Below are positions 8,322 to 56,712 of a DNA stretch of 64,000 nt, one piece after another; position 1 is the stretch's first letter; the number at the start of each line of letters is the position of its first letter. The stretch is from sequence record NC_041878.1. The stretch is one strand, 5' to 3'. Position numbers and translations under genes: made by a program. Under the pieces are notes generated by a model. The model worked only from the letters and a program-made list of their open reading frames with translations, searched no databases and was not told where the DNA came from.

Positions 8322-10046
8322 ATGAATAAAACCAAAAATGTTCTACAAGTGGTTGTCAATTTTGAAACTGCTGAATCAGTACAAGAGCTTAAAAATCTAA
8401 TCCAATCTAAAGTTGGTGATGTTGATATTGTTCGTTACTCAGTTAATCCAACCAACGTAGTTCTTTATGTTCTTGCTGAACCGTCAGCCAATCTACATAC
8501 TATTCAGGTAGAAGATACAGGTAAAACTTACAGTACTATCAATGTAGTCGAATCTATTGTAGAAGACGGTACTAAAGAATATACAGGTACTGTTCAAGAG
8601 GCATTTGCTGAAGTTCAAACTTCTGAACCAAAACCTGCCAACGTTATCATCTTTGAACACGATCCTAAGCTCGTTGCATTACTTAATAAAGAATATAAAC
8701 TATCAAACGTTAGTGTTTATGATGGTTTGGTTTCTATCAGTACTGAAGATGAGATTGTGCTAATTGAACCACAAGTTAATGTGACTATTGATTATAGTAC
8801 TTATAATGAGAGTACTGGTACAGTCAAACTTGTTCAAACCAAAGATGAAGAATCTTCTATAATTGAAGCTTTTAACAATCGTGTTGCAGAAATTCAAGAA
8901 GAAGAATTGTCTAGTCGTGATTTTTCTGAATTAGTAAGTGCAATTGACAATATTGATAATGACCGATTATCATTAACCGAACAGTTTAAGGATAGTATTT
9001 TTGGTCCAGGTATTGCTAAAGCAGAAGACTATGCACGTATGAGTACCGAACGCAATACTATTAATCTAATGTCTGACATTATGAATACGTTTAATGCTAT
9101 TGAAAACGATTTACCTTACAAACTACCAGTTGAAGCACTTGCTAAGATGGATGAACATGAACGCAACGTGCATGAAATGAAAAACATTCTTCTAAATGTA
9201 CAAGGTTTAGGTGAAGAAATTTCTATGGCAGCAGCATTGAAAGAAGACGTGTCTCATACAACAGTAAAAGAAGTAGCTGGTGCGTCACAATCTGGATTTG
9301 TTGATGAAGATGATGATGATATAGAATCTCTATCAGCTTATAGTATTGGTGATACCGTAGTTGAAACAGTAACTCTAAAAGTTGCACTAATTAGCTTTAA
9401 TGCTTTTGATGAGTATGCTGCAAATCACAATATTGTTGGTTGGGATCTATTCACACCAACTACACTACTAATCAAGTACATGGAAGAAGGTGTAACTTCT
9501 GAAGAAAAAATTAAGAAATTTCATGAGATGATGGATAGTCTTGATACTGGTTGGGTACAGAAAGTTTCAGATGAAACTAAATTCTTATCAGAATTCAAGC
9601 AAGTACTAGACCGTGATGTAACACAAGAGTTCTTAGCTCGTGTTAAGAAACACAATGTCTTTGTTCGTGAAAATCTAGCGAAAATTCGTTCTGCACTTCT
9701 AGATATGGAAAAAGACTACGAAGAACTAAAAGATGAAGTCAATCTAACCATCGATTGGGAAAATCTAACCGCATTTGCATCCAAAAAGGAACGTATTGAG
9801 CATCGTGTAAGAGGTGTTCAAATGGTGTTCTCTGGCTCTAATCGTCCAGATGCAAACGTTGTAAGAGTTGATTCTGAATATGAAGGGAAAGATTTTTACA
9901 TTCCATTTAGTTTGATTACTGATGAAATTCGTGAAAAATATGTACTAGATAACGAACTTCTATACATTGAAAATGTTCCAGACTTCGCATTCTATGAAGT
10001 ACCTGTAAATGGTCATGTCATGATTATTGAAAAAACTGACCTATAA
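8322..10046 (+). CDS. large acidic hypothetical protein
   Basis: ~574 aa ORF. Confidence 0.8.
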   Translation: MNKTKNVLQVVVNFETAESVQELKNLIQSKVGDVDIVRYSVNPTNVVLYVLAEPSANLHTIQVEDTGKTYSTINVVESIVEDGTKEYTGTVQEAFAEVQTSEPKPANVIIFEHDPKLVALLNKEYKLSNVSVYDGLVSISTEDEIVLIEPQVNVTIDYSTYNESTGTVKLVQTKDEESSIIEAFNNRVAEIQEEELSSRDFSELVSAIDNIDNDRLSLTEQFKDSIFGPGIAKAEDYARMSTERNTINLMSDIMNTFNAIENDLPYKLPVEALAKMDEHERNVHEMKNILLNVQGLGEEISMAAALKEDVSHTTVKEVAGASQSGFVDEDDDDIESLSAYSIGDTVVETVTLKVALISFNAFDEYAANHNIVGWDLFTPTTLLIKYMEEGVTSEEKIKKFHEMMDSLDTGWVQKVSDETKFLSEFKQVLDRDVTQEFLARVKKHNVFVRENLAKIRSALLDMEKDYEELKDEVNLTIDWENLTAFASKKERIEHRVRGVQMVFSGSNRPDANVVRVDSEYEGKDFYIPFSLITDEIREKYVLDNELLYIENVPDFAFYEVPVNGHVMIIEKTDL

Positions 10047-28547: not shown

Positions 28548-28671
28548 CGGGAATTGGTGTAATGGCAGCACAACGTTATAACATAGATTCTTGTATATAG
28601 GAATTTCACAGCAACCAATACAATTGCATAGGGAGCCGTGAGATGAGGTTCGATTCCTTGATTCCCGACTA
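28548..28671 (+). ncRNA. tRNA-Pro-like (AGG loop) with 50-nt ACAGCAA insert in anticodon stem
   Basis: Acceptor CGGGAAT/ATTCCCG-A, D arm, T arm GGTTCGATTCC; insert 28576-28625. Confidence 0.6.
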
Positions 28672-41994: not shown

Positions 41995-42068
41995 GCCTTT
42001 GTAGCTCAGCGGTAGAGCGGGGATCTCTAAAATCCTTTGTCGTGGGTTCGAATCCCTCCATCGGCACA
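41995..42068 (+). tRNA. tRNA with CTA anticodon (amber suppressor candidate), Phe-like body
   Basis: GGGAT-CTCTAAA-ATCCT; canonical D arm; 2 acceptor and 1 T-stem mismatches. Confidence 0.7.
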
Positions 42069-42371: not shown

Positions 42372-42483
42372 GCATAAATGACGGAATTGGTAAACGTAGA
42401 GTCTGACAATAGCGAAAGCGACGATAGGACTTCGGGAGTAGCCGTGAGGTTCCCTTGTAGGTTCGAATCCTGCTTTATGCACC
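42372..42483 (+). ncRNA. class II tRNA-like RNA with anticodon loop replaced by ~22-nt insert
   Basis: GCATAAA/TTTATGC acceptor, D and T arms intact; GC-GAAA-GC in place of anticodon. Confidence 0.6.
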
Positions 42484-47722: not shown

Positions 47723-47836
47723 GCAGTGATCGTCTAGCGGCCCAGGACACGAAAAGCGATTCTTGATTAAGAATCTTACGGCATCTATAACTTTCATTTC
47801 ACGAACGTAACGTAGGTTCGAATCCTACTCACTGCT
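47723..47836 (+). tRNA. tRNA-Glu(TTC) with 41-nt insert between nt 28 and 29
   Basis: Glu-type D arm GTCTAGCGGCCCAGGAC; CG[insert 47752-47792]TTC-ATTTCAC-GAACG. Confidence 0.65.
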
Positions 47837-49423: not shown

Positions 49424-49548
49424 GGCGAGTTAGCTCAGTGGTAGAGCACGTATGAAACCCAGGATTCCTGTACTTGAATCCCGCAGCAACTATACTCTCA
49501 AGCCTTTTAAGCTCGTGGTCATTGGTTCGAATCCAATACTCGCCACCA
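49424..49548 (+). tRNA. tRNA-Lys(TTT) with 50-nt insert between nt 28 and 29
   Basis: Removing 49451-49500 leaves a 75-nt cloverleaf: CGAGC-CTTTTAA-GCTCG, ACCA. Confidence 0.75.
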
Positions 49549-53520: not shown

Positions 53521-53549
53521 TGAAACGATAGAAATTTTTGTGGTATAAT
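53521..53549 (+). promoter_or_regulatory. class-B promoter
   Basis: TGAAAC-17-TATAAT before permuted tRNA mimic. Confidence 0.8.
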
Positions 53550-53566
53550 ATAGTACATAAGGCAAC

Positions 53567-53687
53567 GGAATCTTACAGCAAAAATAATTAATTTTTGATG
53601 AAAACAAAACGATGGCGGTTCGAATCCCCACCCACGATTTTGCCTTATTTTAAGTGGGAGCATGGTGCTGGATAAACAAGAGATTCC
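53567..53687 (+). ncRNA. circularly permuted tRNA mimic (ACAGCAA family)
   Basis: GGAATC-TTACAGCAA, T arm, CCCAC/GTGGG closed acceptor, D-like hairpin, GATTCC. Confidence 0.7.
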
Positions 53688-53709
53688 AGATTTTAATTTA
53701 GAAAATTTT

Positions 53710-53738
53710 TGAAACGAATCAAAAATTTGTGGTATAAT
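53710..53738 (+). promoter_or_regulatory. class-B promoter
   Basis: TGAAAC-17-TATAAT. Confidence 0.8.
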
Positions 53739-53755
53739 AAACGTATTAGCAACAC

Positions 53756-53873
53756 GAAATCTTACAGCAAACAATATCTTATATTTTTTATGCGAAAAAA
53801 ACGATGTGGTTCGAATCCACAACAACCATGTTGCTATGTTGGTTGTGCATGGGGCTAGAAAACAAAAGATTTC
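53756..53873 (+). ncRNA. circularly permuted tRNA mimic (ACAGCAA family)
   Basis: GAAATCTT-ACAGCAA; TGTGG-TTCGAAT-CCACA; ACAACC/GGTTGT; AAGATTTC. Confidence 0.75.
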
Positions 53874-53907
53874 AGTTTTTTTAATTAAGACAAATAGGAC
53901 AACGGCA

Positions 53908-54060: not shown

Positions 54061-54133
54061 GTTCCCATCGTCTAGTGGTAGGACTTTTGACTTTCTATCA
54101 AAAAACCTCGGTTCGAATCCGGGTGGGAACGCA
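54061..54133 (+). tRNA. tRNA-Glu(TTC)
   Basis: TTTGA-CTTTCTA-TCAAA, T arm. Confidence 0.9.
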
Positions 54134-54231: not shown

Positions 54232-54232
54232 A

Positions 54233-54338
54233 AAGAATCGCACAGCAAACATCAATCTTATATATTTCATTTGGCGAAAACACCTTCGGTTCGATTCCGA
54301 TTTACCACTGGATGTGGGGATAGAAAAACACGATTCTT
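54233..54338 (+). ncRNA. ACAGCAA family RNA with T arm and short closed acceptor
   Basis: AAGAATCG-CACAGCAA...TCGG-TTCGATT-CCGA...CGATTCTT. Confidence 0.65.
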
Positions 54339-54376
54339 GTTTCTAATTTAGCGTGAGTTAACAGAATTTAGCACAC

Positions 54377-54533
54377 GGATTCAGACAGCAAACATAAAAT
54401 CTTAAAAATCATATCATATAACGAGATTGTCTACTCGGACGTAAAACTCCCTTCGTAGTCACTTGGCAACTAGGGATATATAAATTAGTTGTATCGAACA
54501 GTGCTAAGGTTTTTGTTCGATTACATTGAATCC
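54377..54533 (+). ncRNA. ACAGCAA family RNA with inverted closing helix
   Basis: GGATTCA-GACAGCAA...TGAATCC. Confidence 0.55.
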
Positions 54534-54660: not shown

Positions 54661-54781
54661 GGGAAAGTAGCTCAGTTGGTAGAGCACGTATAGACGATTC
54701 TTGTAGTTGAATCTTACAGCAACCATACAATTGCATATATGAAAGCACGGTGTCATTGGTTCGAATCCAGTCTTTCCCACA
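54661..54781 (+). ncRNA. tRNA (Phe-like body) with 43-nt ACAGCAA insert and 10-nt loop
   Basis: GGGAAAG/CTTTCCC, canonical D and T arms; CG[54689-54731]TGC-ATATATGAAA-GCACG. Confidence 0.65.
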
Positions 54782-54845
54782 TAGAATCTAACAGCAAACC
54801 TTATTTTATCAAACCTAACCTTTGAAGCGAAAATAATAGATTCTA
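54782..54845 (+). ncRNA. minimal ACAGCAA family RNA
   Basis: TAGAATCTA-ACAGCAA...TAGATTCTA. Confidence 0.6.
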
Positions 54846-54870
54846 GTACTTTTAATTTGAGAAATACATA

Positions 54871-55532: not shown

Positions 55533-55577
55533 AGAATCCATCCAGCATTGACCGGAAAATAATATATTGGATTCTTG
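55533..55577 (+). ncRNA. minimal ACAGCAA family variant
   Basis: AGAATCCA-TCCAGCA...TGGATTCT-TG. Confidence 0.45.
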
Positions 55578-56226: not shown

Positions 56227-56300
56227 AGCGGGTTAGTATAGAGGCATTACACTCGACTGATAATCGAGCGAAGGCGGATCGTTACCGCCACCCGCTACCA
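56227..56300 (+). tRNA. tRNA-Ile(GAT), atypical T loop
   Basis: CTCGA-CTGATAA-TCGAG; GGCGG-ATCGTTA-CCGCC; CCA. Confidence 0.9.
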
Positions 56301-56310
56301 ACGAATTTTC

Positions 56311-56448
56311 GGAATCTAACAGCAATTAAAAATGTTAACTAAAAAATAGCTGCCGCAAGGCTTGTAGGTTCAAGTCCTACAAATTATGTCTTCATGAATA
56401 ATGATGGTGAAAATGGTAAACACGGCTATTAACTAAACAATGGATTCC
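56311..56448 (+). ncRNA. circularly permuted class II (Leu-like) tRNA mimic, ACAGCAA family
   Basis: GGAATC-TAACAGCAA; ATAGC; CC-GCAA-GG variable arm; TGTAGG-TTCAAGT-CCTACA; D arm GGTGAAAATGGTAAACAC; GCTAT; GGATTCC. Confidence 0.8.
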
Positions 56449-56567: not shown

Positions 56568-56712
56568 TGGAATTTGCCAGCAATTAACTTATTCAACGCT
56601 GCGGGTCGCAGGTTCGAGTCCTGCCAGATATGAAATGATGCTTCGTAAGATAAATCAGATTAGTACTGTAGCTCAGTTGGGAGAGCAGCAGCCCACACAA
56701 AGATGAATTCCA
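56568..56712 (+). ncRNA. circularly permuted tRNA mimic, ACAGCAA family
   Basis: TGGAATT-TGCCAGCAA; GCTGC; GCAGG-TTCGAGT-CCTGC; CAG/CTG; TAGCTCAGTTGGGAGAGC; GCAGC; GAATTCCA. Confidence 0.85.

Follow-up and report, generated by a model that had tools for sequence, protein, structure and literature searches.

What is a 41-nt sequence doing inside the anticodon stem of a phage tRNA gene, and does it stay in the RNA? Group I introns are, by common view, the only intervening sequences in the tRNA genes of bacteria and phages, and phage tRNAs of excess length are as a matter of routine recorded as pseudogenes or assigned the wrong anticodon. The 64,000-nt stretch of DNA analysed here (the window) corresponds to bases 248001-312000 of the genome of Pectobacterium phage vB_PcaM_CBB (KU574722.1), a 378-kb Rak2-like jumbo phage. 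At 47723-47836 on the + strand of the window lies a tRNA-Glu-type gene with an interrupted anticodon stem, recorded in GenBank as CBB_tRNA9, 'tRNA-OTHER'. Judged by sequence comparison, this gene is a member of a large and strongly selected family of module-bearing tRNAs and tRNA-like RNAs of big phages, and the module family is apparently undescribed so far.

The target gene is 114 nt long and does not encode CCA. Its cloverleaf comprises a 7-bp acceptor stem (47723-47729 paired with 47829-47835), a Glu-type D arm (47732-47748, with U11:A24 and U13:G22), a 4-nt variable loop (TAAC), a T arm carrying GTTCGAATC (47812-47828) and a discriminator T; all arms pair and covary. A26 is followed by C27-G28 at 47750-47751, after which an insert of 41 nt, read from the sequence at 47752-47792 on the + strand, separates tRNA position 28 from position 29. 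Beyond the insert, the rest of the anticodon arm, assigned by pairing and compensatory changes, occupies 47793-47807 on the same strand and consists of the inner stem and loop TTC/ATTTCAC/GAA (47793-47805, with the anticodon TTC at 47798-47800) and of C42-G43 (47806-47807), the partners of C27-G28. The departures from a bacterial-type tRNA are thus a stem split into 2 + 3 bp by 41 nt and a length beyond the usual ~72-93 nt, and removal of the insert in silico leaves a 73-nt tRNA-Glu(UUC). The first-pass annotation of this DNA, which had described a gene of tRNA-Glu(UUC) type interrupted by 41 nt at 28/29, is correct to the base, and its reading of the insert as a variant of a module in a neighbouring Lys gene is borne out by what follows. 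It had also held that this copy is not needed for decoding, and the genome agrees: a canonical tRNA-Glu(UUC) lies at 54061-54132 (ARAGORN, Rfam) and a canonical tRNA-Lys(UUU) just outside the window, at 313823-313895 of the CBB record. Routine searches pass over the interrupted gene, which was not called by ARAGORN in the window and was missed by an Rfam run over the whole window. On the target region alone, Rfam RF00005 gives 36.1 bits against a gathering score of 29, with 54 nt taken as insertion; a covariance model built from the Glu alignment (R1) scores the gene at 139 bits.

The insert is one copy of a conserved module, consisting of a covarying 7-bp hairpin followed by A-C-N-G-C-A and set between A-rich, G-poor strands. 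In the target, a leader, AAAAGC (47752-47757), is followed by the hairpin GATTCTT/gatt/AAGAATC (47758-47775), the linker with ACGGCA (TTACGGCA, 47776-47783) and a 9-nt G-free tail (47784-47792), and the order of the parts (leader, helix, CNGCA element, tail) is identical in all inserts. Across the family, inserts are 41-50 nt long. The leader is A-rich and often reads UA(U)GAAA(C)C, and the helix has 7-10 bp and is commonly GAUUC.../...GAAUC, other sequences occurring too. On the 3' side of the helix there is usually one unpaired A and then C-N-G-C-A (CAGCA, CGGCA or CCGCA), and the tail, of 9-14 nt, is G-poor and usually ends in AU. The borders are near-constant, with C27-G28 preceding an insert that mostly starts with UA and ends with AU.

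When the anticodon arm of the target is folded alone the hairpin is the sole stable element, and folding of the unspliced arm predicts that the 2 + 3 bp of the split stem are thermodynamically negligible. In an alignment of ~50 genes fitted to the covariance model, a procedure that leans towards structure, the hairpin is 94% paired, with changes on both sides at 7/7 pairs, and the outer 2 bp and inner 3 bp of the split stem are 90% and 88% paired and likewise show many double changes. The transcribed strand is the only one on which G:U pairs are seen (D479 and window position 28601 are examples), which points to an RNA rather than to a DNA palindrome.

Several other readings of the insert were considered and set aside. 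A pairing of UUACG in the motif with CGUAA (positions 42-46), proposed by RNAfold and RNAalifold, shows no covariation (the alignment cells are 'same' or 'broken') and is impossible in Lys-type genes, and a pairing of leader with tail within the insert is seen in single genes (D479 8850-8973) and is not conserved. An internal sigma-70 promoter picked out by eye in the Glu insert (TTGATT-17-TATAAC) left the promoter scanner silent, and its spacing is absent from the other inserts. A tmRNA-like frame starting from the GCA of the motif gives a short frame and a stop in the Glu copy and in E1, one of the small RNAs described below, and is absent in the others. Resemblances to a boxA/NusB site, to Hfq ARN repeats, to MazF/ToxN sites and to a MotA box are loose, with no consistent fit across the variants.

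Is the interrupted gene under selection? At least eight genomes of related jumbo phages have the same insert at the same site, as does Vibrio phage D479, a T4 relative of the KVP40 type; the first-pass annotation had named a non-conserved insert site in homologs among the things that would count against its reading. Orthologs of the target occur in Serratia phage BF, Yersinia phages fHe-Yen9-03 and fHe-Yen9-04, six Erwinia pEa_SNUABM phages, Cronobacter phage GAP32, Erwinia phage Kaldavass and Xanthomonas phage XbC2, and the ortholog in D479 shares 74% identity with the CBB gene. Between CBB and BF, Yen or GAP32 the target gene is 90-92% identical, whereas their canonical tRNA-Glu genes reach 51-75% and the genes flanking the target only ~78%. 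It is the best-conserved tRNA-like gene of its region. An alignment of seven sequences has 97.9% of its cells paired and changes on both sides at 10 of 28 pairs; its covariation score was reached by 0/500 column shuffles, and slid controls collapse. The stem halves that read CG..CG and TTC..GAA in CBB read CC..GG and TCC..GGA in D479, with the compensations G28:C42 to C:G and U30:A40 to C:G, so the halves of the split anticodon stem are kept complementary. The Glu anticodon itself is not kept among the orthologs. The loop is ATTTCAC (anticodon UUC) in CBB, GAP32 and BF and ATTCAAC (UCA) in fHe-Yen9-04, ATTTCAA and ATTCATA also occur, and Kaldavass, XbC2 and other orthologs have an 8-nt loop, ATTCATAA/C. 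The module stays near-invariant across the same orthologs while the anticodon loop varies.

These comparisons bear directly on whether the locus is simply a dead tRNA gene, disrupted by a selfish MITE-like repeat with no function of its own. Such a history would suit a multi-copy repeat with palindromic arms, the damaged loops of some members and the pseudogene labels in several records (three members are labelled 'tRNA-Pseudo-3/4/5' in the KVP40 record, and 'pseudo' annotations are attached to such genes in BF and fHe-Yen9-04 as well). It is nonetheless very improbable in our view, and already poorly compatible with the data. The gene shows neither the relaxed evolution nor the loss of pairing of a tRNA pseudogene and is instead the best-conserved tRNA-like gene of its neighbourhood; all helices carry compensatory changes, and the restriction of G:U pairs to the transcribed strand counts against this history too. 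The joined-exon pattern expected of an insert-free allele of the Glu gene had 0 matches in IMG/VR and the JGI metagenomes, and 8 IMG/VR contigs carry the insert in the Glu gene. Because no insert-free allele was found there and the exons form a lineage of their own, the gene does not look like the product of a mobile insertion of the MITE or homing type; the lineage, moreover, is old and common to vibriophages and enterobacterial jumbo phages.

The module is found in three contexts, namely tRNA anticodon stems, a set of small RNAs (E RNAs) and intergenic hairpins. Copies of its core, GAWTY-N3-4-C-N-GCA, number 16 on the + strand of the window (17 with one AAATC variant), all between 28.6 and 60.7 kb, and 3 on the - strand, where shuffles give an expectation of ~1.2 per strand; the next 33 kb contain none on the + strand. 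The elements given below with both ends lie on the + strand. Four tRNA genes in the window bear the module. Besides the target (47723-47836), these are a Pro-type gene at 28548-28668 (C1-G72, A73, loop ATAGGGA; tRNA-Val(AAC) in GenBank), a tRNA-Lys(UUU) gene at 49424-49545 (tRNA-Phe(GAA) in GenBank) and a Lys-type body with an aberrant 10-nt loop at 54661-54779 (tRNA-Ser(AGA) in GenBank), whose ortholog in GAP32 has a normal Lys UUU loop. Five CBB genes carry a wrong annotation, either a pseudogene-type label or a wrong anticodon. The earlier count of insert-bearing tRNAs is amended accordingly to four with the module; a fifth over-long tRNA, at 42372-42481, has a different, module-free expansion.

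The E RNAs share a part order that runs from a module arm through ACAGCA, tail, small hairpin, T arm and capped acceptor-like stem to a mini D-like hairpin, an A-rich leader and the complementary module arm. E1 (53555-53695), a small RNA with its own promoter, shows compensatory changes, and its minimum-energy fold forms the terminal helix. From its 5' end it consists of a 5' strand, a GGAATC arm, TTACAGCA, an A/U hairpin and a T arm, followed in its 3' part by the capped acceptor-like stem, the mini D-like hairpin, the A-rich leader, a GATTCC arm and a U run. Its paralog E2 (53744-53882) has the arms GAAATC and GATTTC, a 7-bp capped acceptor-like stem, a T arm and a U run. E3 (54232-54350), of E1-like architecture, adjoins the 3' end of tRNA-Tyr and has the arms AAGAATC and GATTCTT, a hairpin with the loop ATTTGGC and a T arm, and E4 (54366-54510) is a module with the closing stem TTAGCAC/GTGCTAA that lacks a T arm. 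E1 and E2 also share an extra conserved helix, and both have a U run at the end and the promoter TGAAACG-N17-TATAAT, which is CBB's own promoter type (PMC5259590). The terminal helix covaries between paralogs (GGAAUC/GAUUCC, GAAAUC/GAUUUC, AAGAAUC/GAUUCUU), and E3 in BF and Yen has the arms AGGATTC/GAATCCT, amounting to two compensatory pairs. The E RNAs are circular permutations of the insert-bearing tRNA topology, with ends that fall at the hairpin loop of the tRNA versions; E1-E3 have the permuted order and the covarying terminal helix, yet no credible anticodon arm or identity elements.

The intergenic hairpins have the form UAGAAUCUA-ACAGCA, ~45 nt, UAGAUUCUA-GUAC-Un. The stand-alone copy at 54781-54848 (TAGAATCTA-ACAGCA, ~45 nt, TAGATTCTA-GTAC-Tn) lies in an intergenic spacer and has a z-score of -2.7; similar copies start at 55534, 58690, 59323, 59656 and 60720, and the arm pair of the 58690 copy, TGGAATC/GATTCCA, is a compensatory variant. 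The sequence GAUUCUAGUAC, which forms the 5' arm and loop of Lys-type hairpins, reappears as the 3' arm and tail of the intergenic copies. A module followed by a T arm is present at 56300-56390, directly 3' of tRNA-Ile, and two more mini tRNA-like elements of this kind (module and T arm) have their motifs at 56570 and 57955.

The placement of the intergenic copies, immediately 3' of stop codons or of tRNA 3' ends, invites the idea that the module directs cleavage or 3'-end formation and that no re-ligation follows; as a processing site or a terminator-like element, it would punctuate long transcripts of tRNAs and small ORFs. The tRNA bodies would then yield nicked or half molecules, comparable with the intervening sequences of bacterial 23S rRNA. 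The U run after the 3' arm would fit this, as would E3-like elements, which are a module plus a 3' tRNA half placed directly after a complete tRNA. As a terminator, however, a long-range A/U-rich stem of 7-9 bp around a 45-nt loop is poor, and a simple scan of the target detected no intrinsic terminator. With identity-consistent acceptor ends and a conserved ACNGCA also left unexplained, we consider cleavage of this sort improbable.

How far does the family extend, and what do its tRNA bodies have in common? Members were located by a pattern scan of IMG/VR and by BLAST against GenBank phages, and R1 was then applied to the retrieved loci, among which it recognises ~50 distinct insert-bearing tRNA-like genes. 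The carriers are Rak2-like genomes of 350-385 kb, KVP40-like vibriophages and uncultured contigs of 160-210 kb, and among the IMG/VR matches listed and the GenBank BLAST matches at least 82 records of KVP40-type Vibrio phages have members. In bacterial genomes the pattern matches listed, at least 120, look like chance, and those that pass the hairpin/motif filter show no tRNA-plus-hairpin context. The T4 species 1 and 2 RNAs (rnaC and rnaD; NC_000866) were considered as homologs and have no module in register; on T4, R1 finds ordinary tRNAs only.

With the inserts removed in silico, 45/50 distinct genes are recognised by ARAGORN. The calls comprise Glu 6, Lys 6, Asp 4, Gln 3, Asn 3, Tyr 1 and Pro 5, and the remaining tRNAs are unusual (UCA, four-base 'anticodons' and others). 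The bodies of insert-bearing genes are more alike, at 80-88% across specificities, than each is to its canonical namesake in the same phage: identity is 0.86-0.88 between Gln and Pro versions, 0.82 between Lys and Asn and 0.78 between the Glu genes of CBB and D479, as against 0.50-0.78 between insert-bearing and canonical namesakes. Because the bodies are closer to one another than to these namesakes, the comparison indicates that the insert-bearing genes are one old lineage that radiated by anticodon change, not the outcome of repeated insertion into unrelated tRNAs. The first-pass annotation had concluded from the common site in the Glu and Lys genes that a shared mechanism or structural constraint was at work. 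The site does reflect something common, since nearly all of the ~50 relatives have C27-G28 and then the insert, but descent explains this best.

The acceptor end tracks the anticodon. C1-G72 accompanies xGG (Pro) in three lineages, UUG (Gln) goes with a weak 1-72 pair and G73, and GUC or GUU (Asp, Asn) goes with G73. Rules of tRNA identity for the acceptor end and the discriminator are well established, and since the acceptor ends follow them despite bodies that are so alike, selection appears to act on these RNAs as aminoacyl-tRNA synthetase substrates; the sequences thus suggest that the RNAs are substrates of the cognate synthetases. Canonical, insert-free twins for the same anticodons exist in every phage checked (CBB, D479, KVP40 and uncultured contigs). 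Relative to canonical phage tRNAs, the insert-bearing genes are enriched in U35 (NAN-decoding) species, with an odds ratio of 11 and p ~1e-4, although this may stem from ancestry, as those anticodons are single-step mutational neighbours. The loops of the insert-bearing tRNAs are host-like. Host-like loops and the U35 enrichment would fit, if only indirectly, a decoy or target mimic for anticodon nucleases; the link to these nucleases, which the first-pass annotation had raised by way of the modified U34 wobble bases of Lys-UUU and Glu-UUC, is a lead. Odd loops recur in distant phages, ATAGGGA in CBB, D479 and KVP40 and ATTCATAA in KVP40 and Kaldavass, and a few members have no anticodon hairpin or have the module in the loop (D479 9140-9255, KVP40 L079:4702-4814, L122:1643-1760 and L124:2688-2803).

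Several of these features would suit an insert that stays in place. The RNA would then be a stable chimera: its tRNA body would provide for processing, stability and recognition by tRNA-binding factors, and its module would offer a phage or host protein something to hold. The same handle would be borne by E1-E4 and by the intergenic copies, and the whole could act as bait, decoy or sponge in a conflict over tRNA cleavage, or could serve to assemble an RNA-protein particle. The module is the most conserved part of the gene, with a variable anticodon loop. Its 16-17 copies on one strand extend to small RNAs bounded by promoter and terminator, to permuted arrangements and to hairpins between genes, and circular permutation, a common property of RNAs that work through their fold, counts on the same side. 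A chimera would also be in keeping with the canonical twins and the enrichment of U35 species, and the recurrence of non-standard loops in distant phages suggests that the loops are read by a protein rather than by codons. The module region, finally, falls within the early, host-takeover part of the CBB genome (PMC5259590). It is nonetheless not obvious why, in a decoy for enzymes that read anticodons, acceptor end and discriminator should change along with the anticodon, and selection maintains a split 2 + 3-bp stem that barely forms alone. Nor is there a gene family common to the surroundings of the Rak2-like and KVP40-like clusters: proteins common to the neighbourhoods of the CBB loci and of the D479, KVP40 and uncultured loci (BLASTP) are limited to an AAA ATPase and trivial matches. 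The 'RNA ligase' gene 57B beside the tRNA clusters of D479, KVP40 and T4 is Acb1 (anti-CBASS) and is irrelevant here. We consider a permanent chimera the main rival to the intron reading set out next, and somewhat less probable than it.

The reading that we favour, tentatively and at somewhat short of an even chance, is that the module may be a cis-acting processing signal, which would make the insert a small, protein-dependent tRNA intron of a kind not known to have been described in bacteria or their viruses. A trans-acting factor would recognise the module helix and its flanking strands and would cut at both borders, typically CG|UA... and ...AU|, after which position 28 would be joined to 29, perhaps by one of the phage's RNA ligases; the product, 73 nt long, would have a normal anticodon stem of 5 bp. 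The same machinery would also act on the E RNAs, as substrates in circularly permuted form, and on the intergenic copies, as substrates that stand alone, and the twins might be worth keeping for timed or factor-dependent maturation or for shelter from nucleases that read the anticodon arm.

Removal of the insert is favoured by the behaviour of the split stem, which is kept complementary though too weak to form around 41 nt, and by exons that make canonical, identity-consistent tRNAs in the great majority of genes (the 45/50 ARAGORN calls). It is favoured likewise by the constancy of site and borders and by the E RNAs, which mirror the relation of introns to permuted genes in Cyanidioschyzon and archaea. 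The 30S subunit contacts base pairs 29-41 and 30-40 of tRNA in ribosome structures, and an insert at 28/29 should therefore clash with the ribosome, an expectation that again argues for removal. CBB, finally, has two RNA ligases, one of which has been proposed to serve tRNA repair (PMC5259590), and their presence points the same way. Against an intron stand the lack of an archaeal-type splice motif and of a match to any known ribozyme in the searches reported below, and the canonical twins, which make the spliced product dispensable. The anticodon loop of the orthologs drifts while the module is near-invariant, and an intron more conserved than its exon loop is unusual. Members without an anticodon hairpin or with the module in the loop also count against it, as do E1 and E2, which, with promoter, terminator and extra helix, would give no decoder. 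The wider proposition, to which we assign a slightly smaller chance than to the intron itself, is that large phages (Rak2-like jumbo phages, KVP40-like vibriophages and others) own an unrecognised RNA cut-and-rejoin system, for which the module would mark both anticodon-stem introns and permuted tRNA-like RNAs.

The module unites tRNA bodies, permuted tRNA-like small RNAs and intergenic hairpins in one family. If spliced, its inserts would be the first tRNA introns outside group I among bacteria and their viruses; enzymes of phage RNA repair might mature them, and the supply of particular tRNAs could be timed or protected in this way. Phages would then possess RNA-processing enzymes of a new sort and a further means of controlling their tRNA supply, which is currently central to phage-defence research on anticodon nucleases and tRNA-depleting systems. 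If not spliced, the genes would represent a tRNA scaffold of natural origin that displays an RNA aptamer, probably as an RNA-based device for anti-defence or takeover. In both cases this is a new RNA family for annotation, and one that can be tested in the cultured phages CBB, GAP32 and KVP40.

With regard to known systems, Rfam has no family that matches the module, whether the gathering threshold or permissive E-values are applied. Neither that threshold nor E up to 10 brought out a group I intron in the target. Among small self-cleaving ribozymes, the hammerhead, twister, pistol, hatchet, hairpin and HDV-like types were absent from the whole window at the gathering threshold, as they were from local searches of the target's surroundings (E up to 10) and of E1-E3 (E up to 5). 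The one resemblance that Rfam offered for the E RNAs is to the Dictyostelium Class I RNAs (RF01414), which have CUUACAGCAA directly 3' of the 5' strand of the closing stem, as in E1 and E2. At 17-20 bits against a gathering score of 41.5 (E 0.5-3.7), and between unrelated organisms, this match is probably due to chance. Nothing that we found in the literature describes the common module, the covariation in it, the copies outside tRNAs or the selection on them. In the paper on the CBB genome, which lists 33 tRNAs and regards 31 as 'functional', inserts and repeat go unmentioned (PMC5259590). The 'tRNA-Pseudo-3/4/5' features of KVP40 and the 'tRNA-Pseudo/Undet/OTHER' features of related records are the genes described here or their orthologs and paralogs, annotated as pseudogenes or with wrong anticodons.

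Group I introns in bacterial and phage tRNA genes resemble the module in interrupting the anticodon arm, but they are at least ~200 nt long, sit in the anticodon loop and have a P1-P9 core, whereas the module insert measures 41-50 nt and lies in the stem. The only published parallel found is in Lak megaphages, whose tRNAs carry 'enigmatic' conserved introns (Devoto et al. 2019, PMC6784885). Like the genes studied here, those are over-long phage tRNAs with highly conserved inserts, mis-called by standard bacterial tRNA finders; one example differs in having a 93-nt intron at position 37/38 in the loop, with a tRNA-like T arm and no visible ACNGCA module. Engineered tRNA scaffolds share with the target an intact core of acceptor, D and T arms and a foreign structured RNA in the anticodon stem, but they are man-made and their payload replaces the anticodon loop, whereas the target is natural and keeps its distal anticodon hairpin.

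The protein-spliced tRNA introns of archaea and eukarya, those at non-canonical positions among them, are, like the module, short and ORF-less, sometimes lie in the anticodon stem and leave exons that restore a cloverleaf. They differ in their host domain, the module being found in viruses of bacteria, and in their signal: a bulge-helix-bulge has two 3-nt bulges with a 4-bp helix between them at the exon-intron borders, whereas the module has an internal hairpin and ACNGCA away from the borders. No bulge-helix-bulge was found at the borders of the target, where GACACG at the end of exon 1 has no complement at the 3' end of the insert, or in the predicted folds. The permuted tRNA genes of Cyanidioschyzon merolae, for which the relation between intron-bearing and permuted genes is established, have their ends at the position that the insert occupies in other genes, as the E RNAs would, and in archaea a single splice motif serves introns, permuted tRNAs and rRNA processing stems.

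Genes interrupted by the module, the conserved insert of a hairpin followed by ACNGCA that splits anticodon stems, are also found among existing phage tRNA annotations. All three features annotated as 'tRNA-Pseudo' in vibriophage KVP40 (L249, AY283928.2, 179301-181213; L079) are module-bearing tRNAs, and R1, the covariance model built from the insert-bearing Glu alignment, identifies at least five such genes at the KVP40 locus, of which two carry no annotation. The same model identifies one additional unannotated module-bearing gene in vibriophage D479 (L007:9591-9717). The Erwinia phage Kaldavass and the Xanthomonas phage XbC2 encode a 'tRNA-Lys/Glu' of 77 nt whose anticodon region is irregular (L005:9646-9722 and L006:9648-9724, respectively). 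It appears to be related to an insert-bearing gene (compare L034:9917-10038) but to have lost both the module and its own 5′ anticodon-stem strand. The insert-bearing Glu gene carries the anticodon UCA in the Yersinia phage fHe-Yen9-04 and in a single uncultured relative; this version would read UGA if matured. An amber-suppressor tRNA with the anticodon CUA (window 41995-42067; labeled 'Pyl' by ARAGORN) has conserved counterparts in phages BF, Yen, GAP32, Kaldavass and XbC2.

The tRNA-Ile(GAU) gene (window 56227-56300) possesses an unusual T loop, ATCGTTA as opposed to TTCGAAT, and is directly followed on its 3′ side by a module-plus-T-arm element. The same pairing, that is a tRNA-Ile with the T loop ATCGTTA and then the module with a tRNA 3′ half, occurs in uncultured phage contigs of 160-175 kb (for example L018, L111 and L125). 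The ACNGCA module is absent from the fifth over-long tRNA gene (window 42372-42481; tRNA-Val GAC in GenBank, 110 nt), which is built on a type-II body: its variable arm is long, and the near-repeat AGCGA-A-AGCGA lies in an 'anticodon loop' of 24 nt. The 5-bp stem is preserved in the Kaldavass and XbC2 orthologs through a compensatory change from GAGTC/GACTT to GCGTC/GACGT.

With regard to neighboring genes, the gene labeled 'RNA ligase' in D479 (L007:5567-6022) and in T4 (gene 57B, L008:4953-5411) encodes Acb1, the anti-CBASS phosphodiesterase (Pfam E-values of 4e-40 and 3e-60, respectively). The Acb1 gene lies just upstream of the tRNA clusters in T4-type phages, and these clusters therefore adjoin anti-defence genes. 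Directly 3′ of the canonical tRNA-Lys(UUU) of phage CBB, at L128:1918-2902 (KU574722.1 313917-314901), are CBB_476, with a PrlF-antitoxin domain (E-value 1.5e-11), and CBB_477; the latter has no Pfam match, and its GenBank note records similarity to a protein from Vibrio phage nt-1, which is KVP40-like. A permuted tmRNA with a tag of 16 residues ending in LAAA is predicted by ARAGORN on a 185-kb contig from an uncultured phage (L015:2976-3383, minus strand), and an insert-bearing tRNA-Gln gene is ~450 bases away.

The phage's TGAAACG-N17-TATAAT promoter type occurs twice (window 53523-53550 and 53712-53738) where it drives non-coding RNAs, E1 (window 53558-53695) and E2 (window 53744-53882), instead of ORFs. 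Under permissive E-values, cmscan aligned E1 and E2 to the Dictyostelium Class I RNA (Rfam RF01414) with 17.1 and 20.4 bits, respectively, far under the family's gathering score of 41.5. The RF01414 consensus has CCUUACAGCAA immediately 3′ of the 5′ stem strand, and the identical 10-nt string occupies the equivalent position in E1 and E2. The likeness of these phage RNAs to the Dictyostelium family, though odd, is probably due to chance.
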